Shown here piece by piece: positions 4,707 to 39,686 of a stretch of DNA of 64,000 bases; position 1 is the first letter of the stretch; every line of letters starts with the position of its first letter. The DNA is taken from positions 62,001 through 126,000 of IMG/VR virus record IMGVR_UViG_3300025162_000016. One strand, given 5' to 3'. The notes beneath the pieces were generated by a model. That model was not told the origin of the DNA, ran no database searches, and saw only the letters and a list, made by a program, of their open reading frames with translations. The translations under genes were made by a program, and so were the position numbers.

Positions 4707-4756
4707 ATTCGCTATTTATACACAAGAAATATACACAGACAAAGAAATACAAATAT

Positions 4757-12779: not shown

Positions 12780-12816
12780 GTTGCTTTTCTGTATTTTTGG
12801 TATAGCCTACGTCAAA

Positions 12817-13773
12817 ATGCAAAAACAGTTACAATATAAAGACATTATTCTTCGTCCTAACAAGTCTAACGTAAATAGTAGAAATATGTGCGATATTTCC
12901 ACATATATTGGAACAAAAAAATACGCATCTCCGGTATGTTGCGCCAATATGCAGTCTCTCCTAACACCCGAGATATGTAAAATATTTGATGATCGGAATT
13001 GGTTTTATGTTTACCACCGGATTAATGGAGTGTCGGATGTTGAAAATTTTGTAAAAACCGCCAATATAGAAAAATGGAAAACTGTATCTATATCAATTGG
13101 AATAGGAGATGAATGGTGTAATCTTATTAATCGGCTGAACATAGAGGGGTTGACAGTTGATAGTTTTACAATTGATGTAGCATTATCTCATAATAATAAT
13201 ATCATAGTCACCATTAATAAAGTTAAAGAGAAATATCCAAATGCGTATCTCACAGTTGGAAATGGATGCACTCCCGAGTGGATTAACTGGTTAGAAGATT
13301 TTGGAGTAAATTGTGCAAAAATCGGAATAGGCACCTCTGCCAGTTGTAGAACTCGTCAATATACTGGATTTGGATCAACAACGGTATCTTCGTTATTGGA
13401 ATGCGTAGATGCCGCAAAAACAATTGATATTATGAGTGATGGGGGGCTGACAATAGATAAAAATGGAGAAGTGTGGATTGGGGATGTAAACAAAGCATTA
13501 TCGCTTGGAGCCGATTTTGTAATGTCCGGAGCATTATTTTCTAAATGTTTAAATTCTCCCGCCATTATAAATGGATATTATGGAAATGCATCGGAGAAAG
13601 CAAAAGGCAATAAGACTCATATTGAAGGAGTAACAATAAAAATAGAAACAAATGGACTAACAATTTCCGAAATGTGTGATTTAATAGAAGACAGCATTCG
13701 AAGTGGAATCTCATATAGTGGCGGAACTACGTTGGCGGCGTTTAAAACTGTAAAATGGAATATTGTTTTTTAG
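12817..13773 (+). CDS. guaC: GMP reductase / IMPDH-family protein
   Basis: DIILRP, IDVALSH, KIGIG..SCRTR..TGFG, MSDGG, ALSLGADFVM, YYGNAS. No CBS domains. Confidence 0.75.
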   Translation: MQKQLQYKDIILRPNKSNVNSRNMCDISTYIGTKKYASPVCCANMQSLLTPEICKIFDDRNWFYVYHRINGVSDVENFVKTANIEKWKTVSISIGIGDEWCNLINRLNIEGLTVDSFTIDVALSHNNNIIVTINKVKEKYPNAYLTVGNGCTPEWINWLEDFGVNCAKIGIGTSASCRTRQYTGFGSTTVSSLLECVDAAKTIDIMSDGGLTIDKNGEVWIGDVNKALSLGADFVMSGALFSKCLNSPAIINGYYGNASEKAKGNKTHIEGVTIKIETNGLTISEMCDLIEDSIRSGISYSGGTTLAAFKTVKWNIVF

Positions 13774-14034: not shown

Positions 14035-14162
14035 ACATGTCAATCACGGACAGAAAGTCCGATTTCAATATTTCAAGAACAATACGTTTTGGTATTATCA
14101 TAGGTAATTAATTTTATTGTTTTTTATTGTCTTTTCGTGTTTTTTGGTTATATGTATTCTAT

Positions 14163-14735
14163 ATGAAATTAAGTCACTGGGCGAAAGAAAAAGGAATACT
14201 TTACCGAACAGCATGGTTGATGTTTAATCGTGGACAATTAACAGGAGCATATAAATTACCTACTGGAACAATTATTATTCCAAATGAAATCAATAAAATT
14301 AAGGAAGAATATATTATTACTTATGCCAGGGTATCTTCTTCTGAAAATAAAGATAATCTCGAAACACAATCTAAAAGATTAATTGATTATTGTAATGCTA
14401 ATGGATGGAAAACTCATGAAAATATAAAAGAAATTGGAAGTGGATTGAATGATAAACGTCCCAAATTAATTAAAATTATAAATGACGGTAAGGCGTCAAT
14501 CATAGTGGTTGAACATAAAGATAGATTAAGTAGGTTTGGGTCTTCTTATATTGAATTGGCATGTAAACATTTTAACTGTAAAGTTATTTATATAAATAAT
14601 ATTCGAGAAGAAAAAGAAGATTTAGTACAAGATTTCGTAAATATTATAACTTCATTTTGTGCTAGAATATATGGTCAACGAAGAAGTAAACGAAAAACCG
14701 AACAACTAATCAAAGAACTGGAAACATCCAAATGA
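14163..14735 (+). CDS. tnpA: IS607 transposase (serine recombinase)
   Basis: N-terminal HTH, YARVSS, EIGSGLNDKR, VEHKDRLSRFG, FCARIYG. Confidence 0.93.
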   Translation: MKLSHWAKEKGILYRTAWLMFNRGQLTGAYKLPTGTIIIPNEINKIKEEYIITYARVSSSENKDNLETQSKRLIDYCNANGWKTHENIKEIGSGLNDKRPKLIKIINDGKASIIVVEHKDRLSRFGSSYIELACKHFNCKVIYINNIREEKEDLVQDFVNIITSFCARIYGQRRSKRKTEQLIKELETSK

Positions 14736-15946
14736 TTCGATCAACCAAAACAACTCTTAAATTCTCCAATACCACAAAATTGGATAATATCGACCTGTTC
14801 ATCAACGAATATCGTAGAGTTGTTTCTCTGTTTGTTGATAAATTATGGAATATGGATGATGTCAAATGCCTCCTCGATAAATCTCTAACTTCTACCGTAG
14901 ATAGTTGGTTGTCTGCTCGTTCCATTCAATGTGCCGGAAAACAAGCGTCTGGGATTGTTCGTGGTTGTAAAAAGAAACAATCCAAACGATTGTTCCAAAT
15001 ACGTAAATTCAAAAAATTGGGAATGCCTAAAAAAGCTAGGATTCTTCAAACAATTTATAATAATACTAAACTATCTAAACCAAATATTCAAATAATTCAA
15101 CCAGAACTGGATTCGAGATTTGTTGAAATTGACTTGAATAATATTACATCATTTGATGGTTGGTTGACTTTAACCAGTTTGGGAAATGGATTGAAAATCG
15201 TTGTCCCTTTCAAGAAAACGAAGCATTTTAATAAAATGTTGGAGCATGGAGTGTTAAAAGATGGAATTAGAATATCAAATGATGATATAACTTTAATGTT
15301 TGAATTGCCATCTCCGGTTAAAGTTGAAAGTGGAAAAACCATTGGGATTGACATTGGACAAATTACTACTTTAACTTGTTCTGACGGACAAATTGTAGAA
15401 GCAGATATTCATGGTCACACCTACAAATCTATCTGTGAAAAGTTATCAAGAAGGAAGAAGGATAGTAAGAATTTCAATAAGACTGATAGGCACAGGAGTA
15501 ATTATATACATTGGGCGGTGAATAGGATAAATTTAGATGGAGTAAAGAAAGTAAACATTGAGAATATTAAATATTTGAGGAGAGGAAAGAGATCTTCGAG
15601 GTTATTATCTCATTGGAACTACGCAGAATTATTTGATAAGTTGGAAGTAAGACTGAACGATGCTGGTGTCCAGATAAGTAAGGTTAGTCCGACTTATACC
15701 TCACAGAGATGCAACAAATGCGGATGGACTCGCAAGAGAAATAGGAAGGGAAAGCAATTCAAGTGTGATAAGTGCTCATATGAGTGTGATGCGGATTTGA
15801 ATGGTTCCCTGAACATTTCTTTTGATCTTGTTTCAATTGGGAAGCAGGAACGATTACAGCAGAAGAATAGGAATGGATTCTATTGGGATGTTGTGAGCAA
15901 GGAACCTATAGTTCCTAGTGTCCGGAAAACTAGAGTGTTGTCATAA
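14732..15946 (+). CDS. tnpB: TnpB RNA-guided nuclease (IS607-associated)
   Basis: RuvC motifs GIDIG, IENI and DADLN. Zn finger TSQRCNKCG..CDKC. Confidence 0.9.
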   Translation: MIRSTKTTLKFSNTTKLDNIDLFINEYRRVVSLFVDKLWNMDDVKCLLDKSLTSTVDSWLSARSIQCAGKQASGIVRGCKKKQSKRLFQIRKFKKLGMPKKARILQTIYNNTKLSKPNIQIIQPELDSRFVEIDLNNITSFDGWLTLTSLGNGLKIVVPFKKTKHFNKMLEHGVLKDGIRISNDDITLMFELPSPVKVESGKTIGIDIGQITTLTCSDGQIVEADIHGHTYKSICEKLSRRKKDSKNFNKTDRHRSNYIHWAVNRINLDGVKKVNIENIKYLRRGKRSSRLLSHWNYAELFDKLEVRLNDAGVQISKVSPTYTSQRCNKCGWTRKRNRKGKQFKCDKCSYECDADLNGSLNISFDLVSIGKQERLQQKNRNGFYWDVVSKEPIVPSVRKTRVLS

Positions 15947-16111: not shown

Positions 16112-16564
16112 ATGAGAATAGTAATTACCGGACATCGGATGGAGAAGATTGCTCCGTATGATTTTGGATGGATACAAACCGCCATTGACGATGTTTTAGT
16201 TGAAATAAAAACTAAAAACAAAGATTTATTAGCTTATACTGAAATGGCGAGTGGAATTGATTTGTATTTTTGCAAATCATGTATTTTGCTTGGAATTCCA
16301 TATATTGCCTGTATTCCGTTTGAAGGACAAGAAAACACTATGCAGGTGCGGGATGCCGAGTGGAGAAAGCAACTGTTGGAATCTGCCAAAGAGATAAAAG
16401 AAGTTAAAAATTCATGGATGGTGGAACACATGGATGTTGGAATCTGCGTTTTCGACGGTAACAAGGGAGGAACCGCCAATGTTTTCCAACAATTCATTGA
16501 AAAACGACGAAGTTTCTATTGGATAAATCCGGTTGGAAAAGTGACATGGAAATGTTTTCTGTGA
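16112..16564 (+). CDS. SLOG-family (YpsA/DUF1273-like) protein
   Basis: ITGHR, MASGID, IPYIACIPF..Q, NSWMVE.MD, VFDG..GGTAN. Confidence 0.7.
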   Translation: MRIVITGHRMEKIAPYDFGWIQTAIDDVLVEIKTKNKDLLAYTEMASGIDLYFCKSCILLGIPYIACIPFEGQENTMQVRDAEWRKQLLESAKEIKEVKNSWMVEHMDVGICVFDGNKGGTANVFQQFIEKRRSFYWINPVGKVTWKCFL

Positions 16565-16604: not shown

Positions 16605-17132
16605 ATGAAGAAAAACGAAAAATTTCGTCGGACGGCGGAACTGACGATGAAAAAAATCCGAGAAATTTCCAGACATATTCGAAATGTCAGTGATAATTGC
16701 CTTATTTTAGGCGAAAAAATGATAGAACGGGGGGAAATCGATTTAGGAAGAAATCTTATTGCGAATGGGTATGCGCATGATTTGAGTAAGTTTACGGGAA
16801 TTGAATTTGAGTTTATGGCTCCCGGTGTAAAATATGAAGAAGAAAATGCTAAAATGAAATTAAAATTAGCAATTCATCATCATCGGCAAATAAGTCCGCA
16901 TCATGCGGAGCATTGGAATGGAATTGAAAACATGCCCGATGTATTTTTGGCCGAGATGCTATGTGATCTTAAAGCCAGATCAGAAGAATTTGGAACTTCT
17001 CTTATGGACTATATTGATAATGAAGGACTTAAACAATGGCAAATCACCAAGGAAGCCCCGATATACAAAAAAATGATTGGTTATGTAAATTTACTTTGCA
17101 CCAAACCATTTGAGAATATTGCACAGAGCTAA
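16605..17132 (+). CDS. HD-like metal-binding protein (DUF5662-like)
   Basis: HDLSK, HHHRQISPHHAEHW, EMLCD..ARS. Confidence 0.6.
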   Translation: MKKNEKFRRTAELTMKKIREISRHIRNVSDNCLILGEKMIERGEIDLGRNLIANGYAHDLSKFTGIEFEFMAPGVKYEEENAKMKLKLAIHHHRQISPHHAEHWNGIENMPDVFLAEMLCDLKARSEEFGTSLMDYIDNEGLKQWQITKEAPIYKKMIGYVNLLCTKPFENIAQS

Positions 17133-17141
17133 AATATTCCC

Positions 17142-17169
17142 TTGACTATTTCTAAAAAACCAATATACT
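17142..17169 (+). promoter_or_regulatory. Sigma70-like promoter of tagged-gene operon A
   Basis: TTGACT-16 nt-TATACT, 7 nt before ATG 17177. Confidence 0.5.
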
Positions 17170-17176
17170 CACCACC

Positions 17177-17665
17177 ATGAAAAATAGAACATCATTTGTA
17201 TCGAATAGCTCATCCAGTTCATTTATCTGCGACATTTCCGGAGAAGACATCGAGGTATATGATTTGGACTTTAAATCATCTGGATTATGCCGGTGTACGG
17301 CGGGACACGTTTTTAAGGAAGAATATCTCTTTGAATCTTATAAACATTGTATCTCACATAAGGAAATGTTCAATAAATTAATTGAGATTACTGATAGCAA
17401 AAAAGAGTGTCAATACTATCAAAAATTAAATGATATTGAATTACGAAAGGTTTATGATGAAAAAATTAAATCAAATGGAAATCCAATTGGCGGAGATTAT
17501 CCCGCAAATTGTTGCCCGATTTGTTCTATAAATGTAATTACCGATGCCGATTTGGTAAAATATTTTTTAAAGAAATTTAATGTATCCCGAGAAGATATTA
17601 TCAAGGATATTCGTGTTTTCTTCGGCGGTAGTTTTATTAAATTTCAAAGTTATATCAAGGAATAG
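17177..17665 (+). CDS. FVSNSSSSSF-tagged protein 1, Cys-rich; paralog of tagged protein 7
   Basis: MKNRTSFVSNSSSSSFICD, C..GH, CPIC. Confidence 0.8.
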   Translation: MKNRTSFVSNSSSSSFICDISGEDIEVYDLDFKSSGLCRCTAGHVFKEEYLFESYKHCISHKEMFNKLIEITDSKKECQYYQKLNDIELRKVYDEKIKSNGNPIGGDYPANCCPICSINVITDADLVKYFLKKFNVSREDIIKDIRVFFGGSFIKFQSYIKE

Positions 17666-17685
17666 AACTAATATAATTAGTAACT

Positions 17686-18759
17686 ATGACACTAATAATT
17701 GAAAACGGCATTAAGAAGTTTCGGTCGAAAGATTACAACTATAATTTTCGATTGGAGGACGGGTATTTTCAGCGATGGGGGAAAACAGTGGAGGATGATC
17801 CACAACAGTCTCCTGCTCCCGAAATTTTAGATATAGAAACATCGATTAATGGATGTCCCAAGGGAAAGGAATCCGGTAAAATCTGTAATTTTTGTTATAA
17901 AGGCAATTCGGCAGGTACGCCAGAGTATATGTCCTTTGAAAAATTTAAGAAAATTATCGATAAATTTCCTAAAGTGAATGGAATTCATTTTTTGACTCAA
18001 ATGGCAGCAGGAATTACGAGTTTTAATGCTAATCCGGATTTATTCAAAATTTTTGAATATGCTCGTCAGCAAAATATTATTCCTAATCTTACCATTTCGG
18101 GAAGGGATACTCTGACAGATGACGAAATTACAAAACTCGTCTCCCTTATTGGTGCCGCCGCATTTAGTATTTATAAAGAGGATAAGGATCAATGCTATAA
18201 ATTGATTAATCGTTTTCTTAAAGCAGGGTTAAAGCAATGCAATGTGCATTATATGATCAGTCAAGAAACGCTTTCATTTTTATATGAAATATTGAATGAT
18301 ATTAAAAACGATTCTCGTTTAACTGGGTTAAATGCAATTGTATTTTTGGGACTAAAACCTAAAGGCAGAGGAAATACATTTCATATTCTTCCATATGAAG
18401 AATACGATAAATTGGTTACGTTTTGTTTTGATAACAATATTCGATTCGGATTTGATTCCTGTGGATCGCCCAAAGTAGAGAAATCGGTATCCGAAAGCAA
18501 ACAGTTAAACGAAAAAGTTAAAAAATCTATTCTAATGGCATGTGAACGGTGTGAATCCAATTGTCATAGTTATTATATCAATGTAGAAGGAATTTCTTTT
18601 CCATGTAGTTTTGCTGAGGATATGGAAAAGGGAACAAATATACTAGAAGTAAATGATTTTTTAAATGACGCATGGAATTCTCCGGTGTCTTTAAATTGGA
18701 GGGAACGTTTGCATGGGCTGGACCGTCAGTGTCCACTTTATCCTCAGATTAGAATATGA
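17686..18759 (+). CDS. Radical SAM enzyme with SPASM/twitch-like C-terminus
   Basis: CPKGKESGKICNFC (CX9CX2C). C-terminal CERCESNC.S.YINVEG..FPCSF...QCP. Confidence 0.82.
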   Translation: MTLIIENGIKKFRSKDYNYNFRLEDGYFQRWGKTVEDDPQQSPAPEILDIETSINGCPKGKESGKICNFCYKGNSAGTPEYMSFEKFKKIIDKFPKVNGIHFLTQMAAGITSFNANPDLFKIFEYARQQNIIPNLTISGRDTLTDDEITKLVSLIGAAAFSIYKEDKDQCYKLINRFLKAGLKQCNVHYMISQETLSFLYEILNDIKNDSRLTGLNAIVFLGLKPKGRGNTFHILPYEEYDKLVTFCFDNNIRFGFDSCGSPKVEKSVSESKQLNEKVKKSILMACERCESNCHSYYINVEGISFPCSFAEDMEKGTNILEVNDFLNDAWNSPVSLNWRERLHGLDRQCPLYPQIRI

Positions 18760-18762
18760 CAT

Positions 18763-19182
18763 ATGAAAACTAGAAATGGATTTGTATCAAATAGTAGTTC
18801 TTCCTCATTTATTGTTGCAGTGAAGCAGCATTCAGATGCGTGTCCCACTTGTGGAAGAAGAGACCCAGATTTCCTTGATATGGTAGAACATATGGGCAAT
18901 TCCGATGGATATGAGACGACTAAACTTCATCATCGAACGGCACAAGATATTTGGGAGAAAGGGGAAGAAAGTAGAGGATATCAACCGCAAAACAGAGGAA
19001 AATCTCCATTATTTGGAGTGATGATAGATGCCGAACATAAAGGATACAAGGTCGCTGAGATCGAAATATCCTATCATGATACTTCTACCACAGAGATGAT
19101 GAGTCAAATGGAAGCAACCAAAAATCTTATTGTCTTATGGAGCAATCATAGAGACATTAAGCCGAAAAATATAAAATTATGA
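18763..19182 (+). CDS. Tagged protein 2
   Basis: MKTRNGFVSNSSSSSFIV, then CPTCG. Confidence 0.8.
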   Translation: MKTRNGFVSNSSSSSFIVAVKQHSDACPTCGRRDPDFLDMVEHMGNSDGYETTKLHHRTAQDIWEKGEESRGYQPQNRGKSPLFGVMIDAEHKGYKVAEIEISYHDTSTTEMMSQMEATKNLIVLWSNHRDIKPKNIKL

Positions 19183-19766
19183 AAACTAGAAATGGATTTG
19201 TAAGTAATTCTTCTTCATCTTCGTTTATTGTGGGATTTGATACAATACCCAAAACAGTTGAAGAATTGAAGAAGTTACTTTTTAAGAATGATGAAATTCT
19301 ATCTGCGTATGATATAGAATTGGACACCCAAAAAGCGGCAGATATAATTTTCGATGATATTAAAAATCAAAAACTTGCTACAAAAAAACGACTTTTCGAT
19401 GTAATTAGAGCAGGTGAATTAGCAGATTATCCTGAAACGGAGTCAAACCATCCGGTTTATAAATTAATGGATGAGTTTTGCAAGAAATACCCCAAACAGC
19501 ATTGGGGCACTCCAGGAGAAATAGAAAATAAAGATACAAGAAAATTCGCTCAAAAAATTTGGGATATGCAGCATGCAAAATGGAAAGCGGAGAATAAATC
19601 GAGAGATGTGGCGGCAATGAAGTATGTTAATGAGACGGTTCTTCCTAAATTGAAAGATAAGAAAGTTTTTATTTTTGAATACGAAGATCATGATCCGGTT
19701 GGAAATGTATTGGAACATGGTAATGTTTTTAACCGAGTGGTTCATTTTCATATTAGTATGCATTAA
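19179..19766 (+). CDS. Tagged protein 3
   Basis: MKTRNGFVSNSSSSSFIV; ATGA-coupled. Confidence 0.8.
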   Translation: MKTRNGFVSNSSSSSFIVGFDTIPKTVEELKKLLFKNDEILSAYDIELDTQKAADIIFDDIKNQKLATKKRLFDVIRAGELADYPETESNHPVYKLMDEFCKKYPKQHWGTPGEIENKDTRKFAQKIWDMQHAKWKAENKSRDVAAMKYVNETVLPKLKDKKVFIFEYEDHDPVGNVLEHGNVFNRVVHFHISMH

Positions 19767-19772
19767 AAAATT

Positions 19773-20282
19773 ATGAAAATTAGAAATGGCTTTGTAAGCA
19801 ACAGTAGTTCGAGTTCTTTTATTGTTCGGCGGGGCGACAGGAGACCGAAGGGGTCGGTATGTGTACCAATGGTTGTTTTGACTGAGCAACAGGATACCAT
19901 ATTAGATAATTATGGTTTTCGTAAAACTACTGCTCATGTTCCAAGTGGAGTTCCTTCGTTTTATGACAAAAAAGCATGGAAATCTGAGGCGAGGATTATT
20001 AGTAAGGGTTTGAACGAACTTGGATACAATTGGGGATACGAAGTTGATTGTAATCAAGATGAAGTCATGGTATTCTTAATTGAGAATAAGATTCCATTCG
20101 TAGCAGAATGTCATTACGGACATGAATCATTTATATATGATCCTAAAAATGATACTCTATACAAGGGAATTAATTATGGAACGATGATGGAAACCTACGG
20201 ACCCAATAGTTATGAAATTAGTAGAGTAACATCCGTCACCGGTAAAGAATGGATAGAGAAAATAAACATTAAAAAATTATGA
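19773..20282 (+). CDS. Tagged protein 4
   Basis: MKIRNGFVSNSSSSSFIV. Confidence 0.8.
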   Translation: MKIRNGFVSNSSSSSFIVRRGDRRPKGSVCVPMVVLTEQQDTILDNYGFRKTTAHVPSGVPSFYDKKAWKSEARIISKGLNELGYNWGYEVDCNQDEVMVFLIENKIPFVAECHYGHESFIYDPKNDTLYKGINYGTMMETYGPNSYEISRVTSVTGKEWIEKINIKKL

Positions 20283-20373
20283 AAATAAGAATAGGATTTG
20301 TTTCAAATAGTTCGTCGAGTTCATTTATATTATTTGGCGCTTATATGGACACTACTAAAGACGAGGAATTACA

Positions 20374-21628
20374 TCAACTACCCCTGCCTGAAGGCAGAGG
20401 TTTGTAAGACTCCTAAACTCTTAGAAGATTTACATACAATAGGCTGATTGATTGCAGCCCGAGAAATATTTATACTGGCATTGTAATCCGCATTAGTAGA
20501 ATATCCACATTTCTTACAAGTAAATAATTCTTGTGTTAATCTATTGTCTTCTTCACAATGATTGCATTTACTGCAAATTTGAGAAGTATATGATGGATTA
20601 ACAAATAATACTGGTATTCCTGCTATTTTTGCTTTGTAAGTAATGAACTCCCTCAATTGTCCGAAAGACCATTTACCAAGTCTTGCGTTATTATCCCGCA
20701 ATTTCTTGTTAAACTTTTTAACCGTTTTCTTGGAATAAAAATGTAAATCTTCCAACTTAATTCCTACTTCAAGTGCCTTTGCTTTCACAACAATCTTCTT
20801 ACTTATACAATGATTTGTATCTTTCTTATATCTGTTTTCTTTTTTACTAATTTTAACTAAATGTTTTCTCGCCGATTTTGTTCCTTTTGATTGTAAATTT
20901 GATTTTAATAAAGTAATCTTTTTTCTATGAGTTTCAACCTTATCTCCCGAATAAATTTCTCCATCGGATGTTACTGCAATATTAATTATTCCCATATCAA
21001 CTCCTAAAAACTTATTGGTTTCTATTGGTTTCTTCTCAATTTCATCATAAACAAAGTTAACATAAAATTGTTTTTTTACTTTGTCATAGATCAACTCACA
21101 TTGGCCACATAAGTTCAGATCACTAAGTTTTTTATAAGATTGATATGGAATTTTAATTCTACCACTCAGAACCATTAGTGATACCATATTGTCTTTTTTA
21201 ATGGTAAAATTTCTGGTATCATAGTCTATGGAACCATATTTGTAATAATTTATCAATGTATTTCGCTGGTCTTTGTTGGCATAGGAAGAAGAAACTTTTC
21301 TTACTACGAGGATTGCCATTTGAGATGAAAGATTGTATTTCTGTTTTAATTCGTAATACACTGATTTCTGCAATAACATTTTATTAAATATTTTGGAATG
21401 GAATGCTTTTTCGGCAACCCAGTTACAGGCATTATTAAAATTCTCCATAACATCGAGTAATTGTTGATGTTGTGAAGCAGTTTCTAATAATTTACATTTA
21501 ATGGTTATTTTCACTTATTCAATCTTTCACCACATAACTATAATGTAAGAATACGAAAACATCAATTATTTTTATTTATTTTATGGTGGCAATTCCTCCC
21601 TTACCTAAAGGAAAGGGATTCCTTGCCA
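20374..21628 (-). mobile_element. Non-autonomous IS200/IS605-family element (tnpB only)
   Basis: Subterminal hairpins CCCCTGCCT-GA-AGGCAGAGG (about 20381-20400) and CCCTTACCT-AA-AGGAAAGGG (about 21598-21617). No target duplication; ends uncertain by 2 nt. Confidence 0.85.
20378..21514 (-). CDS. tnpB: TnpB RNA-guided nuclease
   Basis: GVDMGIINIA, KLEDL, NPSYTSQICSKC, CKKCG, NADYNASINI. Confidence 0.92.
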   Translation of the reverse strand: MKITIKCKLLETASQHQQLLDVMENFNNACNWVAEKAFHSKIFNKMLLQKSVYYELKQKYNLSSQMAILVVRKVSSSYANKDQRNTLINYYKYGSIDYDTRNFTIKKDNMVSLMVLSGRIKIPYQSYKKLSDLNLCGQCELIYDKVKKQFYVNFVYDEIEKKPIETNKFLGVDMGIINIAVTSDGEIYSGDKVETHRKKITLLKSNLQSKGTKSARKHLVKISKKENRYKKDTNHCISKKIVVKAKALEVGIKLEDLHFYSKKTVKKFNKKLRDNNARLGKWSFGQLREFITYKAKIAGIPVLFVNPSYTSQICSKCNHCEEDNRLTQELFTCKKCGYSTNADYNASINISRAAINQPIVCKSSKSLGVLQTSAFRQG

Positions 21629-21836
21629 CAAAAAGGTTGAAGAACACGGTCTCATACTTTGTGAGAGTGAGGAAGACGGCACATGTATAGGAGTAGGTGT
21701 CGAAGAAATGAAAGGAACCGAAACCCTTACCCAATTTAGAGAAAGAATTGCCAAACAATTCGCTGAAGTTGGACTTGAAGTGAAACTCTCAGATTTGCGT
21801 TTTATCGGCGGGAGTTGTCGTAGTTAATATTAAACG

Positions 21837-21865
21837 TTGACAAAATAATCACTATCTGATATAAT
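21837..21865 (+). promoter_or_regulatory. Consensus sigma70 promoter of tagged-gene operon B
   Basis: TTGACA-17 nt-TATAAT, exact consensus. Confidence 0.8.
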
Positions 21866-21896
21866 ATCATTATGAAAGTTAAAAAAACATTAAAAT

Positions 21897-22172
21897 ATGA
21901 AAACACGAAATGGATTTGTTAGTAATAGTAGTTCGAGTAGTTTTATTATTTACCGCAAGTTATTGACAGAGGATAACTTGGAGAAAATTCAGAATTGGTG
22001 GAATGAGAATGAGAAAAATATTCATGATGATGACGGGGCGTATTACAGTGGATATAATCGCTTCTCACATAATTTTATTTTAGCTAGATGTCATAGTCAT
22101 AGCACACAATTCTCAAAGTTATTGAAAGAATGTGGAGTGAAAGAGGAAGATTATATGATGGATTATCGTTAA
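21897..22172 (+). CDS. Tagged protein 6
   Basis: MKTRNGFVSNSSSSSFII. Confidence 0.8.
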   Translation: MKTRNGFVSNSSSSSFIIYRKLLTEDNLEKIQNWWNENEKNIHDDDGAYYSGYNRFSHNFILARCHSHSTQFSKLLKECGVKEEDYMMDYR

Positions 22173-22176
22173 AATT

Positions 22177-22521
22177 ATGAAAACAAGACAAGGATTTGTA
22201 TCAAACAGTTCGAGTACATCCTTTACCTGTGACGTTTGCGGAAATGAGCAGAGCGGGATGGATATGTCTCTTAGAGATTGTAGTATGGTTAAATGTGTTA
22301 ATGACCACACGGTTTGTCGTGATGAAATGTTGAACTACGAGAGTGGGAAAACCTATGATGTTCCCGCCGAGTTTTGTCCGTTATGTCAGATGAAGAAAGT
22401 ATGTCACGATGATATTTACGGGTATGCCTTGCGGAAACTCGGAAAGACACGCAACGAATTGGAAGAGGAAATTAAAATCCTCTTCCCAACATATAAAGAG
22501 TTCAAAGATTATATTAAATAA
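22177..22521 (+). CDS. Tagged protein 7, Cys-rich
   Basis: MKTRQGFVSNSSSTSFTCDVCG, C..DH, CPLC. Confidence 0.8.
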   Translation: MKTRQGFVSNSSSTSFTCDVCGNEQSGMDMSLRDCSMVKCVNDHTVCRDEMLNYESGKTYDVPAEFCPLCQMKKVCHDDIYGYALRKLGKTRNELEEEIKILFPTYKEFKDYIK

Positions 22522-22522
22522 T

Positions 22523-22798
22523 ATGAAAACAAGACAAGGATTTGTATCAAACAGTTCTTCTGCTAGTTTTATTGTAAGTCTTGAGAAGATCACCGCAAAA
22601 GATGCATTAAAGCTAATGGACTATGATAAACTTCCAGCGGATGCAATGGGACGGGAATGGAAAGACGGATGGGATATTGAGGTGGATTTTACTAAAGGAT
22701 TAATTCACGGATGTGCCATTATGGATAATGGCGATTTGAGTGAATATTTGATAAAAGAAAACGTCAATATAAGTCTTTTTGTGTGGAAACACGATTGA
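22523..22798 (+). CDS. Tagged protein 8
   Basis: Internal ATG of track ORF 22409: MKTRQGFVSNSSSASFIV. Confidence 0.8.
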   Translation: MKTRQGFVSNSSSASFIVSLEKITAKDALKLMDYDKLPADAMGREWKDGWDIEVDFTKGLIHGCAIMDNGDLSEYLIKENVNISLFVWKHD

Positions 22799-22815
22799 AA
22801 AAGCCGGTAAAAAAT

Positions 22816-23127
22816 ATGAAAATAAGATCGGGTTTTGTATCGAATAGTTCGTCCAGTAGTTTCTGTATTCTCGGGGTTGATATTGATGCCGATACTATGG
22901 ATAAAATAGAAGGAATGTATATGGAGCTAAAAGGAACTCGGGTGAGAACTCAATTTTCTATATCCCACGATAATGGAAAATATGTCGGCATCGATGTTAC
23001 TACGATGAAAGATAATGAAACTCCGCTTCAACTTAAACAAGAGATTGTTGATGTTCTGCATAAATGCGGGGTGGACATTGAAATCAATAATATTAACTTT
23101 ATCGAAGATGGGGGTTATAACGGATGA
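22816..23127 (+). CDS. Tagged protein 9
   Basis: Internal ATG of track ORF 22783: MKIRSGFVSNSSSSSFCI. Confidence 0.8.
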   Translation: MKIRSGFVSNSSSSSFCILGVDIDADTMDKIEGMYMELKGTRVRTQFSISHDNGKYVGIDVTTMKDNETPLQLKQEIVDVLHKCGVDIEINNINFIEDGGYNG

Positions 23128-23852
23128 AAACACTATGTTCATATTTGGGTGGAAGTATTAGTTATGGATTAAACACTCCCACCTCGGACAAAGATGAGCG
23201 ATTTGTGTTTTTAAACACAGATGTATCTAAAATCGTCGGGTTAAGCCGACATGAACATGAATCTAACCAAACGGACACCGAAGATAAATTTGGATGGGAA
23301 ATTAGACATTTTTTAAATTTGCTTCATAGGGGAAATACAATGTGTCTGGAAATATTGTATAACCAAAATTGGTTGGAAATTACTAAAGAGTTCATATACA
23401 TTCAATCCTTTAAAGATAAACTAATAGATTCCACTTGTTTATACAAATGCCTTCGAGGATATTGTCAATCCGAACGGGCATTAGTGTTGGGAAAAAGAAC
23501 CGGTGTTCTTGGCGGCAAACGAAAAGAACAATTAGAAAAATATGGATACTCGTATAAAAATGCAGTTCAATTTTTACGATTATGTTTATGCGGAAAAATC
23601 TTTTTTCAAGAAGGATACTTCCCGGTTAATATTCGCCAATTCGATGCGTCAGAAACGCTGTTTTCAATTAAAACCGAACCGGAAAAATATTCGAAAGAGG
23701 ACGTTATAACTCTGATGGATGACTATGAAAAAATGCTAGAACAATCATATGCCACCATTAAAATTAAACACCATTACGATGTTGACATTGCTAACCAAAT
23801 CTGCTATGATCTATATGTGCCGATATTAGTAACTGTCAATAAAAATAGATAA
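23124..23852 (+). CDS. Pol-beta-superfamily nucleotidyltransferase (RlaP/Nuc-transf-like)
   Basis: GGSISYGLNTPTSDKDERFVF, N..CLEIL, YSYKNA.Q.LRL. ATGA-coupled to tagged protein 9. Confidence 0.78.
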   Translation: MKTLCSYLGGSISYGLNTPTSDKDERFVFLNTDVSKIVGLSRHEHESNQTDTEDKFGWEIRHFLNLLHRGNTMCLEILYNQNWLEITKEFIYIQSFKDKLIDSTCLYKCLRGYCQSERALVLGKRTGVLGGKRKEQLEKYGYSYKNAVQFLRLCLCGKIFFQEGYFPVNIRQFDASETLFSIKTEPEKYSKEDVITLMDDYEKMLEQSYATIKIKHHYDVDIANQICYDLYVPILVTVNKNR

Positions 23853-23868
23853 TTAAAAATAAACAAAT

Positions 23869-24309
23869 ATGTCAAAAATAAGCTTAGAAGAAGTTGAGGG
23901 AGTCCTGTTGCAGCATAAGATTAGCGATACCGGTTCAATTATCAAAGATTTGGAAAAAATCCTTGAGGAATTGAAAGCGGAATCGGAAGCCAATGCGGAG
24001 GATAAGCCAACGTATGAATATGTTGTCGTTATCCACGATCCAAGCGGAGAACTAAAAGCACAGAAGAAAGACGAGGTGCTTTCAGCTTACATCGTGCAAC
24101 AGGAAGAAGGACAAGATGCCGGTTTGATTCTATCCAAACTTAAGGAATGTGCGACTACTCAAAACGAAACCGCCAAACGCAAGAAATCTCGATTGGATAG
24201 TATTCGTGATATTTTCGACGGTCTAAAATCTAAGTTTGCTAAAGAGAAGAAGCTCAAAATAAAGACCAAGGAACCAGTTCGGATTCTCTTGACGGACGGA
24301 AAGTTGTAA
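23869..24309 (+). CDS. Hypothetical protein, last gene of operon B
   Basis: ORF followed by a terminator. Confidence 0.55.
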   Translation: MSKISLEEVEGVLLQHKISDTGSIIKDLEKILEELKAESEANAEDKPTYEYVVVIHDPSGELKAQKKDEVLSAYIVQQEEGQDAGLILSKLKECATTQNETAKRKKSRLDSIRDIFDGLKSKFAKEKKLKIKTKEPVRILLTDGKL

Positions 24310-24325
24310 TAATCAATAATAACAT

Positions 24326-24359
24326 AAAGCCTCTGGATTAATTTCCAGAGGCTTTTTTT
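24326..24359. terminator. Intrinsic terminator between convergent operons
   Basis: AAAGCCTCTGGA-TTAATT-TCCAGAGGCTTT plus T-run. Confidence 0.85.
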
Positions 24360-25931: not shown

Positions 25932-27605
25932 CTATCCACCATGTTTATTTTTCGAAGATGGAACCCATTCATGTTTTAGATTCCCACAATCCCAGATTCG
26001 ATCATATCCATTTAATTGCATATTCTGCCATTCAGTTAAGTTACTGTCGAAATTGGGAAAAATATCTTTTAAATTGTGTTTTCTAAAATTATATCGGTAT
26101 ATTCTTTTATTATAATTCTTTCCCAGATACCAATAATTAGGTCCGGTGTTTTTATTTATAGAAGTAAATCCTAATGATTTATAAATATTTTTATCAGTAT
26201 TACTCCATCTTACATCCGAATAAGATAAAATATATTCGGGATTATAGTTTTTTATAAAATAGGACAATAACTTACTGCCAATTCCAATAACTCGTTTATT
26301 TAAATGCGTACAAAACCTATACATTTCCCATTGGTTCTTTTTAGCGATATTTCCTAAAGCTATTCTCAATGCCCCAAATGTCATCACCGCCACAAGTTCG
26401 TTATTGTAATATGCTCCCACCCTCAATGATGCCATATCTTTTCCCTGAATATGATTGAGATCTAAAAACTCATTACATACATCCGCATTTAATAATCGAA
26501 TATCACATTTTCTGGCATATATTTTATCAGAAAGATTTTTATTAAATATATGAATTAATTTATTTTTGACTATTTCCTGTTTGTATATCCATTCGTCTTC
26601 AAATATATGAATTAAACGTATCTGCTTATCTTTACACGCCGTTGTTTTATTGAGGTGATAGTTTTTATATTTTTTCCCTCCGATTTCTGAATGCCAAAAT
26701 AATCCGTCATATTCAATTGCAATATTTAGAGATGATATAAAAATATCTAATTCTTTACCGCTCAATATTTTTCGATCGTTTGATATAATAGTTTCATTGG
26801 GTAATATTGATTTTATAAATTCTAATATTTTAGTTTCGGTTTGGGTTTTACTTATAGGATTGCAAATAAAACATCTTGGTATATTACCATTCAATAAAGT
26901 ATCTTCAAATTTGGATTCACAGAATTTACATTGAAACCAGTATTTAGTATCATATGATACATTCCCCCGATATTCCAATTCTGAAAATAATGGTATTATA
27001 TTTGTAAATTTACTCCCATTTACTATAAAATTATAATGATTTATCCGGCGTGCCTGTAATTGTTTTTCTTTTATTTCTAAATTTTGAGATATATAAGGCA
27101 CTCCATAAGTTTTAATGTTAGTCGCCTTTGTTTTCTTTTTATTCTCTTCCAACATCGCTACATTATTAACTCCATATTTATCCAAATTTGTTTTTTTAAC
27201 TCGCTCTAATATTTCGGAACTTTTTAATGGAATAGTAACTTTATATTTTTTATATAATGATTCTATTTGCCGGTTTCTTAATTCACTGTTTTGTTGAGGA
27301 TTCCTTACCCCATATCGCTCTAAACATGTATTAATCTGTTTATCTCTTATTACTTTGTTCTGACTGGGGGATATTACTCCATATTTTTTTAAACACGTTT
27401 TTTTAGCTTTCTCCGATATACACTCAAGTTTAGCTACATTATCAACTCCATATTTTTTTAGATTAAAATCCCGCCGACGAAGATTTGTTTTTTCAATATT
27501 CTCAGGCCGAGAACGATATTCCTCAAAACATCCCGTAGAACAATGCTGCTTATTCCGATGACGAGTATTAAATTCTTTATTACAATTTTTACATTTTTTT
27601 ATCAT
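25932..27605 (-). CDS. Hef-like homing endonuclease with KYG repeats
   Basis: CKNC/CSTGC N-terminus, KYG repeats, ELDI..EYDGLFWH, HIFEDEW, RIWDCG. Confidence 0.75.
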   Translation of the reverse strand: MIKKCKNCNKEFNTRHRNKQHCSTGCFEEYRSRPENIEKTNLRRRDFNLKKYGVDNVAKLECISEKAKKTCLKKYGVISPSQNKVIRDKQINTCLERYGVRNPQQNSELRNRQIESLYKKYKVTIPLKSSEILERVKKTNLDKYGVNNVAMLEENKKKTKATNIKTYGVPYISQNLEIKEKQLQARRINHYNFIVNGSKFTNIIPLFSELEYRGNVSYDTKYWFQCKFCESKFEDTLLNGNIPRCFICNPISKTQTETKILEFIKSILPNETIISNDRKILSGKELDIFISSLNIAIEYDGLFWHSEIGGKKYKNYHLNKTTACKDKQIRLIHIFEDEWIYKQEIVKNKLIHIFNKNLSDKIYARKCDIRLLNADVCNEFLDLNHIQGKDMASLRVGAYYNNELVAVMTFGALRIALGNIAKKNQWEMYRFCTHLNKRVIGIGSKLLSYFIKNYNPEYILSYSDVRWSNTDKNIYKSLGFTSINKNTGPNYWYLGKNYNKRIYRYNFRKHNLKDIFPNFDSNLTEWQNMQLNGYDRIWDCGNLKHEWVPSSKNKHGG

Positions 27606-27824: not shown

Positions 27825-29252
27825 ATGGATTCAAATTTATTGAAAGAGGCAATTGCAGACGCAAAGGCTGTCCGACAAACTGCTCTGGCAAATGCCAAAG
27901 CGGCATTGACAGAAGCATTTGGAGAACAACTTTCAGCGATGCTTGCCCCAACACTCGAAGAGGATACCATGGAGCAAACTCCTAATGGTCAAGATCCTTT
28001 AGCTCAAACGCAACCACCCGTTCCCGGCATGGAACAAGAATCGGTCAATGAAGCCGATATCGAAGAAATCATTCGTGAACTCGAATCTGGGATTTCACAG
28101 GATCAACAAGATCCAACTGGAATGGGTGCAAATGTTCCACCGCCAGTACCGGGAGCAGGCGCTCCGCCAGTACCGGGAGCAGGTGCCCCGCCATTGCCGG
28201 GAGCAGGTGCCCCGCCATCACCCGAGATGGGAATGGGAGCAGGCGCTCCTCCATCGCCCGAAATGGGAATGGGTGCAGGTGCCCCACCACCAGTACCGGG
28301 AGCAGGTGCTCCGCCAATGGAAACCCCGCCAGTAACACCAGATGCAACACAAGGAGATGAAGAAATGGATGAAGAATTTGATATTAATGAACTTTTGGAA
28401 TCGTTAAAAGACGAGGACGAAACGTGCAATCTCCCTCCGTGGGAAAAGAAAGGCAATGACGACGAGGAACAATTAGATGAAGGCGTTCCCGTTAAATCTT
28501 CAGGCATTGCAGGTTCTAATAATAAGATGCCGTCATCCGATGCAAGTGCCTCTTCTCATATTGAGTCGGGTGGCAGAGATAAAGTTGGCGGTGGAGAAGG
28601 CTATAAAGCCGGACCCGAAGATGCCACTACAGCTAAACGACCAAATCAGGCTAAAAATGCCAATAAAACAAATCTTTCTACTCCCGGTGGAGCATTAAAG
28701 GAAAATACCGGTGGTTCTACTCCCGGCTATCCAGAAGGTGCTAAAAAGAAATCTACCGGTAATGATCCAAGTGAAGTCAGTGATACGCCAAATGCTGGTC
28801 CAGTTACTCCAGAAAAAATGTCTACTCCTGCTCTTCATAAGGAAAATGTTGCCCTTAAAGGACAACTCAAGGAAGCCGAGGATACCCTCACTTACCTTCG
28901 TACCCAACTTAATGAGATCAACTTGCTAAACGCCAAATTGCTTTACACGAACAAGCTGTTTAAAGAATATAGCATGCATAACGATAAGAAAATGAAAATC
29001 GTTGAAATGTTTGACCTCGCCAAAAATGTTCGTGAAGTGAAAATGACCTATGCGGTTATCGCTGAGTCCCTCAATTTCGGTGCCGACTTTAAAAGAAAAG
29101 TGTCTTCTAAAGTTCAATCTATCACCGAAGGCATGGCGAGTAAACCCATAGCCGGAACTGCCCCTCGACAAATCATTGCCGAAAGTGCGAGATCCGAAAT
29201 GGTGTCTAAATTCCAACGACTCGCAGGAATTAAGACCCCATCAAATAAATAA
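27825..29252 (+). CDS. Prohead scaffolding/core protein
   Basis: [21 protein letters not shown] start; [18 protein letters not shown]; KFQRLAGI end. Directly upstream of the capsid gene. Confidence 0.8.
28136..28320 (+). repeat. In-frame PPVPGAGA / [12 protein letters not shown] tandem repeats
   Basis: 24-33 bp GC-rich imperfect repeats. Confidence 0.85.
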
Positions 29253-29281
29253 TAGCGAGGAGAATTAAGGAAAAATCGTAT

Positions 29282-38510: not shown

Positions 38511-39686
38511 ATGGATAATATACTTTCAGATCAAGATAGCATCAGATTTACCGGCAGTGGTTCTAATCCTGCTGGTAACACTCCTTATGGTTTTTACGAC
38601 AACGACGCAATTTTCCTTACGGAATGTTATAGAGGAATGTTATGGGCATCTAGAAAATTGGGTTATCCGATAACCGACATTGAAATGATTGACATTAATT
38701 TCTACGCCTGTTATGAAGAGGCAGTCAATGAATACGGTAAAGAAGTAAATCAATTTAATATTGTTAACAACATGCTCGTGTTTCAAGGTCAAAATCTTGA
38801 AACTTTAGGTAGTGTAAATGGCAGGAACGTTCAAGGAACCGGTCTTAGTCAAATGATTATGTTGGCGAAGGATTATGGTTCGGAAACCGGTGCTGGTGGT
38901 AGAGTAGATTGGAAACGAGGTTATATCCAAGTTAATGCGGGTATACAAGACTACGATCTTCAGGCATTATGGGGAGATGCTAAAGAAAGCTGTAACAAAA
39001 TGGAAATAAAACGTATATTCCATGACCGACCCCCTGCCTCGGCTCGAATTTATGACCCATTTTCGATGACAGGAATGAGTTATAGTAATGTTTTGACTGA
39101 GCTAGGATTTGGGGCATATTCTCCGGCTGTTCAATTTTTAATGACCCCAATTTTCGAAGATTTGCTTCGGATGCAATCGATTGAATTTAACGATATGGTA
39201 CGTAAATCGGCATATAGTTTTGAGATTGTAAATAATAAAGTAAGGGTATTTCCCATTCCGACATATAGCTATAAGATGTGGTTTGAATATATTCTTGAAA
39301 AAGATAGATTAGAGAGTTTATTATCGGCATCTGGGTCGAATGTAGTATCTGATTACTCGAATGTTCCGTATGTTATGCCTATATATTCCAAGATTAATGA
39401 ACCTGGGAGACAATGGATACGCAATTATTTTCTGGCCTGTTGTAAAGAGACTTTAGGACAAATTCGTTCAAAGTATCAGACTATTCCTATTCCGAATGGA
39501 GAAACTACTCTTAACGGTCCGGAGTTGATTCAGGCGGCACAAACTGAGAAAGAATCACTATTAGAGAATTTGAGATTAATGCTTGAGCAATCGGGGAAAT
39601 TTTATCAATTGGAAAAACAATCTGAATTAACCGAACAAATTAATAATACATTAAAGGGAGTTCCTTTGTATATTTACGTGGGATGA
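38511..39686 (+). CDS. Neck/head-completion protein (gp13-like)
   Basis: KLGYPITDIE, CKETLGQIRSKY..IPIP...LNG, VPLYIYVG. Lies after the head genes. Confidence 0.7.
   Translation: MDNILSDQDSIRFTGSGSNPAGNTPYGFYDNDAIFLTECYRGMLWASRKLGYPITDIEMIDINFYACYEEAVNEYGKEVNQFNIVNNMLVFQGQNLETLGSVNGRNVQGTGLSQMIMLAKDYGSETGAGGRVDWKRGYIQVNAGIQDYDLQALWGDAKESCNKMEIKRIFHDRPPASARIYDPFSMTGMSYSNVLTELGFGAYSPAVQFLMTPIFEDLLRMQSIEFNDMVRKSAYSFEIVNNKVRVFPIPTYSYKMWFEYILEKDRLESLLSASGSNVVSDYSNVPYVMPIYSKINEPGRQWIRNYFLACCKETLGQIRSKYQTIPIPNGETTLNGPELIQAAQTEKESLLENLRLMLEQSGKFYQLEKQSELTEQINNTLKGVPLYIYVG

Follow-up and report, generated by a model that had tools for sequence, protein, structure and literature searches.

Why should nine small proteins encoded side by side in a giant phage begin with the same stretch of 16 amino acids, and why should a radical SAM (rSAM) enzyme be encoded among them? 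The initial annotation had described such an array, with an RlaP-like nucleotidyltransferase (NTase) as the only other enzyme, and our first step was to verify its existence in the window, i.e. the whole 64-kb stretch of DNA that was analysed. Listing of the open reading frames (ORFs) and a six-frame motif scan revealed exactly nine copies of M-K-x-R-x-[GS]-F-V-S-N-S-S-S-[STA]-S-F, all on the + strand, starting at 17177, 18763, 19179, 19773, 20279, 21897, 22177, 22523 and 22816, and none elsewhere in the window; the observation as first made is therefore confirmed. The features of the locus are as follows.

17177..17665 (+), tagged protein 1 (162 aa), of a Cys-rich, zinc-ribbon-like type, immediately upstream of the rSAM gene
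17686..18759 (+), radical SAM enzyme with a putative partial SPASM (twitch-like) C-terminal domain
18763..19182 (+), tagged protein 2 (139 aa)
19179..19766 (+), tagged protein 3 (195 aa), from one of the two most widespread tagged families, also present in T4-like phages
19773..20282 (+), tagged protein 4 (169 aa)
20279..20407 (+), tagged protein 5, N-terminal fragment of a gene interrupted by an IS
20378..21514 (-), TnpB (IS200/IS605-type OrfB), which splits tagged gene 5; an intruder and not a component of the system
21636..21827 (+; approximate limits), C-terminal remnant of tagged gene 5
21897..22172 (+), tagged protein 6 (91 aa)
22177..22521 (+), tagged protein 7 (114 aa), zinc-ribbon-like type, with the tag variant SSSTSF
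22523..22798 (+), tagged protein 8 (91 aa), with the tag variant SSSASF
22816..23127 (+), tagged protein 9 (103 aa), of the type ending in GGYxG, the most widespread tagged cluster
23124..23852 (+), RlaP-like nucleotidyltransferase, whose start overlaps the last tagged gene by 4 nt; a local accessory and not a core component

The genes are tightly packed, with successive gaps of 20, 3, -4, 6, -4, [IS], 4, 1, 17, -4 and 16 nt. The copy at 20279 is cut after about 33 codons by the TnpB gene (Pfam Cas12f1-like_TNB, E 8.7e-25, and OrfB_IS605, E 3e-8); when the two pieces were searched separately, the C-terminal remnant matched the C-termini of intact 95-103-aa tagged proteins from other phages, in three of the loci that we fetched (L060, L136 and L093; E 1e-7 to 7e-5). 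Tagged protein 1 clusters with the 22177 copy and with Cys-rich tagged ORFs in other loci, and a tagged zinc-ribbon ORF also sits directly upstream of a 40%-identical rSAM in another locus, L006. Across the 16 tag codons the mean pairwise identity is 87% at the amino-acid level, 71% at the nucleotide level and 60% at third positions, and serine codons of both the TCN and AGY boxes occur at every Ser position, so that selection acts on the peptide, as had been proposed. Chance does not explain the tag either, because in all fetched loci the strict pattern occurred on the opposite strand only once among 704 matches.

The next question is whether the association with the rSAM is general. That tagged genes might usually occur without the enzymes had been set beforehand as a condition against the idea, and for the rSAM this is not what we found. 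Loci seeded on the tag fall into 61 dereplicated groups, of which 40 have the rSAM within 10 kb; many of the rest are cut by contig ends, although a few long contigs do have tagged ORFs and no rSAM within this distance. Conversely, among loci seeded on the rSAM, 72 of 80, or 64 of 70 after dereplication, carry at least one strict tag ORF within 10 kb (1-13 per locus), and 259 of 260 of these ORFs lie on the rSAM strand, usually directly downstream; several of the exceptions carry variant tags. Over 120 locus groups the rSAM, found in 96, is the only recurrent untagged family, since the next most frequent ones reach 10 groups or fewer. The pairing recurs in phages of many kinds. The T4-like phages RB16, RB43 and KP15 carry the rSAM plus two tagged genes; the latter are not adjacent to the rSAM gene but about 20 kb away. 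Nevertheless, among isolated phages 172 records carry the rSAM and 175 and 174 carry the two T4-like tagged proteins, with a near-identical genus breakdown. Vibrio phage D479 has at least four tagged ORFs upstream of its rSAM. In cellular genome collections the system was seen only on phage-like MAG contigs.

The same survey bears on the NTase, which the initial annotation had suggested might NMPylate the serines of the tag. The gene product matches Pfam RlaP (PF10127; 46.2 bits against a cutoff of 23, E 6.3e-12) and phrog_388 (E 6e-22), so its membership of that family is established; its gene overlaps the last tagged gene, and relatives lie near tagged genes in T4-like phages, in the loci L009/L010 and in L075. 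However, a relative is present in only 6 of the 120 dereplicated groups, and the NTase therefore cannot explain a tag conserved in about 25,000 protein clusters. It is not part of the core, and we regard this reading as very unlikely.

What, then, are the tagged proteins? Their bodies are mostly acidic, range from 72 to 269 aa and fall into many families with no detectable homology: BLAST yields about 90 clusters, some with family-specific motifs including zinc ribbons, and profile-profile comparison with hhalign found no similarity (best probability 29%), in agreement with the initial view that they are of unrelated types. They also evolve much faster than the rSAM: in a relative whose rSAM is 82% identical, tagged orthologues are only 34-53% identical and reordered, yet the tag is unchanged. 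By contrast, the tag has a fixed position. In 347 of 347 tagged ORFs a Met lies exactly six residues before F7, and a profile search, which returned 25,356 clusters, places the tag at positions 1-30 in nearly all of the 150 best hits.

Tagged protein 3, which matches phrog_7397 over its full length, is the one member for which we have a model. AF2 predicts its fold with a pLDDT of 92, residues 1-9 being disordered (pLDDT below 50) and residues 13-20 forming strand 1 of the sheet; no fold match was found in the PDB. Besides the tag, D60, D170, E179-H180-G181 and H195 are invariant in this family, which suggests an active site of its own that might include the Ser run. Because residues 13-20 of the tag are an integral beta strand of the model, part of the conservation could be structural, and one may ask whether the tag was grafted onto unrelated proteins or is the only surviving part of one very fast-evolving superfamily, in which strand 1 and a Ser-rich loop would bind a metal, a phosphate or a cofactor. 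All tagged genes would then descend from one ancestor by duplication, and the rSAM would be linked because it makes a small molecule or cofactor that these proteins bind or use, not because it modifies them. It is consistent with this view that true tagless homologues of the bodies were essentially absent from the loci, most of the 60 apparently untagged hits being variant tags or truncated calls; tag and body therefore travel together. On the other hand, besides the lack of similarity between bodies and their range of sizes and motifs, a role internal to the fold does not explain why residues 1-9 are conserved yet predicted to be unstructured, and a structural strand would not normally stay identical between T4-like and unrelated jumbo phages while the rest of the protein drops below 30% identity. 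We consider this possibility doubtful, although it is the most serious of the alternatives.

The model also bears on the suggestion that the tag is a shared assembly strand, through which tagged paralogues would join one another, or a common scaffold, to form hetero-oligomers. Residues 1-9 are free in the monomer model and have a sequence compatible with a beta strand, and several tagged types co-occur in many loci. But no fixed combination of types exists, since repertoires vary from 1 to 13 and differ between close relatives, and this reading gives no role to the rSAM; it appears improbable.

Another possibility is that the tag is a sorting or fate signal read by a conserved machine, for packaging into the capsid and injection, for export or for regulated proteolysis, the rSAM being a neighbour with a separate role. 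The strict position at residue 1, the basic start and the diverse small acidic cargo would suit such a signal, and in the window the array lies between the portal gene (4664-7723) and the major head gene (29282-31000). Arrays of diverse small phage genes sharing a short conserved N-terminal leader exist in the case of the capsid-targeting leaders of T4 internal proteins; there, however, the leader sequence is different and no rSAM is known to be associated. Sorting does not explain the near-universal, same-strand adjacency to one rSAM family across very different phages, the tagged genes of T4-like phages lie among small non-structural ORFs, and the tag contains neither a hydrophobic core for Sec or prepilin recognition nor an acidic cleavage site of the kind used by prohead proteases. 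This explanation is unlikely. The related proposal that MKxRxG|F resembles a class III prepilin leader is not supported: what follows G6-F7 is the polar V-S-N-S-S-S-S-S rather than a hydrophobic stretch of about 20 residues with Glu at +5, no Glu is present, and G6 is replaceable (Gly in 251 of 259 cases; S, K, N and C also occur). Nor does the tag fit a glycyl radical site, which requires an invariant Gly in an RVxG[FYW] motif near the C-terminus and a PflA-type activase: G6 is not invariant, its spacing to R4 differs, the motif is N-terminal, and the rSAM resembles SPASM maturases, not activases.

We then asked what kind of enzyme the rSAM is. The protein matches phrog_7293 (E 1.6e-77), with weak Pfam Radical_SAM and SPASM hits; in an alignment of 32 family members, 22 hit Radical_SAM and 23 hit SPASM (best E 2.7e-6). 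C57, C67 and C70, which would bind the SAM cluster, are conserved, with a spacing that varies from CX3 to CX13 before CX2C and is CX9CX2C in the window copy, and membership of the radical SAM superfamily is thereby satisfied. Invariant residues include C70, C259, C289, G302, C307 and C349. Of the SPASM signature (CX9-15GX4C ... CX2CX5CX3C ... C), the segment C289-x12-G302-x4-C307 is invariant, as are C259 and C349, but the CX2CX5CX3C block is absent, a pattern that fits a twitch-like single cluster, inferred from sequence alone. The AF2 model has a pLDDT of 94 and its nearest solved structures in a Foldseek search are rSAM enzymes, the peptide maturases SkfB (E 2.5e-9), SuiB (E 4.5e-9, TM 0.65-0.68) and PqqE, together with BlsE. 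This last hit calls for caution, because some SPASM and twitch enzymes, such as BlsE and BtrN, act on small molecules, and BtrN, NirJ-type and W-cofactor maturase models are among the weak sequence hits. No RiPP recognition element (RRE, a PqqD-like winged helix) was detected: Pfam gave no hit other than Radical_SAM and SPASM, and the 31 N-terminal residues model as four beta strands without helices.

Comparison with known systems is instructive in this respect. As with the RiPP maturases SkfB, SuiB and PqqE, an rSAM protein with a predicted auxiliary-cluster domain is encoded in the same operon as putative substrates that share a short conserved sequence in otherwise variable products, which recalls the one-enzyme-many-substrates logic of ProcM-type systems. 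Here, however, the putative substrates are folded proteins of 72-269 aa and not short peptides, the conserved part is the very N-terminus and is probably itself the modified site rather than a leader that is removed, only about half of the SPASM cysteine motif is present, no RRE was found, and the system is viral. The anaerobic sulfatase-maturing enzyme (anSME) is an rSAM/SPASM enzyme that matures many different full-size proteins by acting on a short Ser- or Cys-containing motif near the N-terminus; serine oxidation would suit a Ser-rich target, and some database sources label relatives of our rSAM 'sulfatase maturation enzyme AslB'. But the (C/S)-x-(P/A)-x-R motif is absent from the tag consensus, the bodies are not sulfatases, and the rSAM has no significant match to anSME models. 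A precedent for modification of a full-size protein encoded beside an rSAM/SPASM enzyme is provided by CrpC/CrpA of Methanococcus voltae (PMC13692751), although that system makes thioethers on a Cys-rich protein and has an RRE and a full SPASM domain, while the tag has no cysteine. Finally, triceptide (three-residue cyclophane) synthases are rSAM/SPASM enzymes that cross-link an aromatic ring to the C-beta of the third residue in aromatic-X-X motifs (PMC11499958). F7-V8-S9 fits that pattern formally, but no specific sequence similarity to these enzymes was found and S9 can be Gly in natural variants, which argues against S9 C-beta as the site. We found no description of the motif in the searchable literature, in line with the initial annotation, which knew of no characterised function for it.

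The interpretation first offered, i.e. a RiPP-style recognition tag on whole proteins, is thus supported in part: it holds for the peptide-level selection, the unrelated sequences of the bodies and the rSAM as a true, conserved partner with a predicted fold closest to RiPP maturases, but not for the NTase or the prepilin analogy. The reading that we favour, and hold to be somewhat more likely than not, is that the tag is the docking and modification site of the rSAM. In this view, the free, basic stretch of residues 1-9 would dock on the enzyme, possibly on its conserved N-terminal four-stranded sheet, and the enzyme would abstract a hydrogen atom in the invariant N10-S11-S12(-S13) segment, at the junction with strand 1 of the substrate, to install a covalent modification. 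At this point we may only guess at the chemistry: the first candidate is dehydrogenation of a serine to a formylglycine-type aldehyde (-2 Da), as in the anSME and BtrN class, and the second a side-chain cross-link (-2 Da). Our analysis establishes the tag, its selection as a peptide, its fixed position at residue 1, its genomic coupling to the rSAM, the structural kinship of the rSAM model to RiPP maturases and, in one model, the flexibility of residues 1-9; that the tag is the substrate, where it binds and what covalent change it undergoes are inferences from gene context and fold similarity, without any modification having been observed.

If so, the locus is one example of a widespread, phage-restricted two-part system, made of one rSAM enzyme with a reduced, putatively twitch-like SPASM domain and a variable set of 1-13 small, mostly acidic proteins that share only their first 16 residues. 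One maturase would thus serve many unrelated substrates through a common tag, as ProcM-type or sulfatase-maturing enzymes do, but here on whole folded proteins of a virus, a protein-level analogue of RiPP maturation. As to the putative role of the tagged proteins themselves, their acidity, their diversity and their fast turnover between related phages are typical of host-takeover or counter-defence proteins.

The window holds exactly nine ORFs that begin with M-K-x-R-x-[GS]-F-V-S-N-S-S-S-[STA]-S-F, all on the + strand between 17177 and 23127, with none elsewhere in the 64 kb; the observation made in the initial annotation therefore holds. Eight of these ORFs are intact, at 162, 139, 195, 169, 91, 114, 91 and 103 aa, and the ninth, which starts at 20279, is interrupted after about 33 codons by a minus-strand TnpB gene. 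When the two pieces of the interrupted gene were searched separately, the C-terminal remnant matched the C-termini of intact 95-103-aa tagged proteins from other phages. Within the 48 nucleotides of the tag, mean pairwise identity is 87% for amino acids, 71% for nucleotides and 60% at third positions, and both serine codon boxes are used at every Ser position, so that selection is on the peptide. The genes are tightly packed, with overlaps of 4 nt or gaps of 1-20 nt. The 30 nt preceding each of the nine starts are A/T-rich (for example ...TTAAAAAATT at 19149-19178) with no obvious Shine-Dalgarno sequence, which may reflect the host's mode of translation initiation. Both enzymes named in the initial annotation are present. 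The features of the array and of its surroundings are as follows.

570-4706: a 1378-aa ORF that matches terminase large-subunit families only at its two ends (residues 132-257 and 1166-1310); the middle carries an unrelated or helicase-like segment, which could be an intein or another insertion in the terminase gene
10598-12292 (+), 39674-41185 (-), 31112-32980 (+) and 25932-27605 (-): several large homing-endonuclease-like ORFs, two being phrog_3339 members (E 5.5e-114 and 1.4e-124) and one a weaker hit, and also a 557-aa protein with DUF7487 plus a weak GNAT match
12781-13773: an IMPDH/GMP-reductase-like gene (Pfam IMPDH, 2.6e-31)
14127-15946: an IS607-like pair just upstream of the array, a serine resolvase (Pfam Resolvase, 7e-18) followed by, and overlapping, a TnpB (Cas12f1-like_TNB, 1.6e-17)
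16112-16564: a 150-aa ORF with no Pfam hit
16605-17132: a DUF5662 protein (E 1e-22), directly upstream of the first tagged gene
17686-18759: the rSAM, which matches phrog_7293 (E 1.6e-77), with weak Radical_SAM and SPASM hits
19179-19766 (+): the 195-aa tagged protein
20378-21514 (-): the TnpB gene that interrupts the tagged gene starting at 20279
about 21636-21827: the C-terminal remnant of the interrupted tagged gene
23124-23852: the RlaP-like NTase, which matches PF10127 (E 6e-12)
27825-29252: a 475-aa ORF with no PHROG hit
29282-31000: the major head protein gene
44439-51566: a 2375-aa ORF

The window belongs to a contig of up to 369 kb and encodes a terminase, a portal, a major head protein and tail proteins, so it is from a jumbo phage. 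No close DNA relative exists among isolated phages, megablast of the region having given no match, and scans of the window for tRNAs and Rfam families returned nothing. The large homing-endonuclease-like ORFs make up an unusually high load of selfish elements. With the TnpB of the IS607-like pair and that at 20378-21514, the phage carries at least two TnpB elements within 7 kb. GC content rises to 0.48 at 28001-30000, against about 0.35 elsewhere, in a stretch that covers the 475-aa ORF and the start of the major head protein gene.

To assess how general the tag is, we first scanned IMG/VR, in which 466 exact GFVSNSSS stretches were found. In the fetched loci, 347 of 347 tagged ORFs (259 unique) have the initiator Met exactly six residues before F7. 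M1, S9, N10, S11 and S12 are invariant in this set, K2, R4, F7 and S15 are 99% or more conserved, and G6, V8 and F16 are about 97% conserved. A looser search revealed natural variants with A or G at position 9, H at 7, C/S/K/D at 6 and C/M at 15-16, but the N-S-S core persists in all of them. A 32-position profile of the tag, searched against 1.84 billion cluster representatives, found 25,356 proteins at E <= 1e-3 and 385 at E <= 1e-10, and nearly all of the best 150 matched at residues 1-30. The few internal matches are rare single polypeptides containing two complete tagged units in frame, the second of which still begins with MKxR; they could be stop-codon losses, recoded stops or gene-calling artefacts, and they show that the tag evolved as an N-terminus. 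That the tag might be a sorting or packaging signal is a possibility that we regard as quite unlikely. In 185,579 species genomes only 136 exact GFVSNSSSS stretches exist, and the confirmed ones lie on MAG contigs that carry the same arrays, most with the rSAM, or on one 178-kb contig (locus L162) filed under the marine flavobacterium Flagellimonas marina. The latter carries an NTase 99% identical to that of Cronobacter phage leE and the same two tagged genes, and is probably a contaminating T4-like phage genome. No cellular version was thus found in this collection, and the system is essentially viral.

Linkage of tag and rSAM was examined from both sides. Starting from the tag, 40 of 61 dereplicated locus groups have the phrog_7293-type rSAM within 10 kb, and most of the others are cut by contig ends or are T4-like phages in which the rSAM lies about 20 kb away. 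Starting from the rSAM, 72 of 80 loci, or 64 of 70 dereplicated groups, carry at least one strict tagged ORF within 10 kb; 259 of 260 of these ORFs are on the rSAM strand, typically directly downstream, with a median of 3 and a maximum of 13 per locus, and several of the six apparent exceptions have variant tags. When all 120 groups are pooled, the rSAM (96 groups) is the only untagged family that recurs, the next most frequent reaching 10 groups or fewer: relatives of the IMPDH/GMP-reductase-like gene recur near the arrays in 9 groups, and the RlaP-like NTase reaches 6. NMPylation of the tag by the NTase, as proposed in the initial annotation, was accordingly rejected and is in our view very unlikely. 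Among 50,697 isolate records, the rSAM is in 172 and the two T4-like tagged proteins are in 175 and 174, with a near-identical genus breakdown (phages of Klebsiella, Enterobacter, Cronobacter, Citrobacter and Escherichia, including RB16, RB43-type phages, KP15 and KP27). This is one clade, and so it counts as one observation only, but it shows that the association survives loss of adjacency. In Cronobacter phage leE (locus L001, 6852-9098), and at the same position in RB16-like phages, a 748-aa protein with a vWA-like DxSGS motif lies between the two tagged genes, and an RlaP-like NTase lies 3-4 kb upstream. Vibrio phage D479 (258 kb) has at least four tagged ORFs upstream of its rSAM.

With the tag removed, the 259 unique proteins fall into about 90 BLAST clusters, and profile-profile comparison (hhalign) of the bodies of the 16 larger families gave no significant pair (best probability 29%). 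Searches of Pfam and NCBIfam returned nothing meaningful for any tagged protein. Each family has its own conserved residues, including a four-Cys zinc-ribbon type represented by the 17177 and 22177 copies. We asked whether this zinc-ribbon type is the specific neighbour of the rSAM, but it is not, since the adjacent types vary and no particular type is obligatory; nor does any fixed combination of types accompany the enzyme. The bodies are acidic, with a median pI of 4.6 and 88% below 5.5, against 34% of control ORFs from the same loci, although this control set is noisy. In a related phage whose rSAM is 82% identical, the recognisable tagged orthologues are only 34-53% identical and in a different order, and some types are not shared, whereas the tag is unchanged. 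True tagless homologues of the bodies were essentially absent from the loci, most of the 60 ORFs that lacked a strict tag being variant tags or truncated calls.

The 195-aa protein, the one tagged protein for which a model was obtained, is predicted with pLDDT 92 and pTM 0.84. Residues 1-9 (MKTRNGFVS) have pLDDT below 50, while residues 13-20 (SSSFIVGF) form the first strand of a sheet that also includes strands 162-169 and 188-193. A PDB sequence search with the profile of this family gave nothing, and Foldseek found no fold relative of the model in the PDB and, in BFVD, only what appears to be its own T4-like homologue. Besides the tag, the family has invariant D60, D170, E179-H180-G181 and H195, which suggests a functional site of its own. 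One alternative is that the tag is an intrinsic motif of one diverged superfamily, with the rSAM supplying a cofactor, but we consider this unlikely. Another is that it serves as an assembly strand, which seems more unlikely still.

The alignment of the rSAM family (A3) shows the SAM-cluster cysteines with a loop between the first and the second that varies from 3 to 13 residues (CX3 to CX13 before CX2C, and CX9CX2C in the window copy), which is unusual for radical SAM enzymes. Four further Cys are invariant, C259, C289, C307 and C349, with C289-x12-G302-x4-C307. This is the first half of the SPASM motif without its CX2CX5CX3C block, and we read it, by inference from sequence, as a twitch-like single auxiliary cluster. 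Pfam SPASM matches 23 of 32 members and Radical_SAM matches 22 of 32. The AF2 model, with pLDDT 94 and pTM 0.91, begins with a conserved four-stranded sheet at residues 2-31, ahead of the barrel. Foldseek ranks the peptide maturases first, SkfB (E 2.5e-9) and SuiB (E 4.5e-9, TM 0.65-0.68), followed by BlsE and PqqE. A search with the rSAM profile gave multi-repeat PPR hits, which we discounted as spurious, plus weak SkfB, GDGT-MAS and BtrN hits, and database sources give only generic names, such as MoaA/NifB/PqqE/SkfB family, AslB-like or SPASM.

Four lines of evidence point the same way: a short invariant peptide sits at the extreme N-terminus of many unrelated, fast-evolving proteins; it has near-universal, co-directional adjacency to a single rSAM/SPASM family; that enzyme is, in its predicted structure, akin to peptide maturases; and the first nine tag residues are predicted to be free. 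Together they support the tag being what the enzyme recognises and modifies, a reading that we hold to be somewhat more likely than not. The tag, its fixed position and its linkage to the rSAM are established by the sequence analysis, but recognition and covalent modification of the tag, and the site and nature of any such modification, are inferred from gene context and predicted structure. The interpretation offered in the initial annotation is thus partly supported: its association of the tag with the rSAM stands, but the roles proposed for the NTase and for a prepilin-like signal do not. The prepilin-like reading, as well as the glycyl-radical and sulfatase-motif readings that we also considered, fails defining features of the respective class. 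A precedent exists, since a SPASM rSAM enzyme that modifies a full-size neighbouring protein has recently been demonstrated (PMC13692751). The site would most likely be within N10-S12, the only residues that never vary. As to the chemistry, we may only speculate. One possibility is dehydrogenation of serine to an aldehyde, which would match the anSME and BtrN type of reaction and a Ser-rich target. Alternatively, F7-V8-S9 formally fits the aromatic-X-X motif of cyclophane-forming rSAMs (PMC11499958), but S9 can be Gly in natural variants.

Both gene families are catalogued only as PHROGs of unknown function, and no Pfam or NCBIfam model covers the tagged proteins. A full-text search for the motif strings returned only unrelated plant and animal papers, and further searches on phage rSAM, SPASM and T4-like phages found no description of the system. 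An rSAM/SPASM maturase with cognate tagged substrates is in itself known; what is new here is the viral setting, the presence of whole-protein putative substrates in arrays, and a tag fixed at residue 1.

A more far-reaching view, which the evidence does not rule out but which we put forward only tentatively, is that phages of many lineages, from T4-like enterobacterial phages to phages above 300 kb, use one twitch/SPASM radical SAM enzyme to install a covalent modification on an invariant 16-residue N-terminal module heading a large, hypervariable repertoire of small acidic proteins. The modification, for example a serine-derived aldehyde or an N-terminal macrocycle, would arm, stabilise or target these proteins for host takeover or counter-defence, functions for which the fast-evolving acidic cargos are candidates, and the whole would be a protein-level, viral counterpart of RiPP biosynthesis covering tens of thousands of protein clusters. 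If the rSAM does modify the tag, this would be a new post-translational modification system that is specific to viruses and very common. It would extend RiPP-style logic (one maturase, one short tag, many cargos) from peptides to whole proteins, and the result could be a portable 16-residue tag for enzyme-directed protein modification. It would also assign a first functional handle to about 25,000 clusters of phage proteins of unknown function, including genes in well-known T4-like phages of E. coli and Klebsiella.
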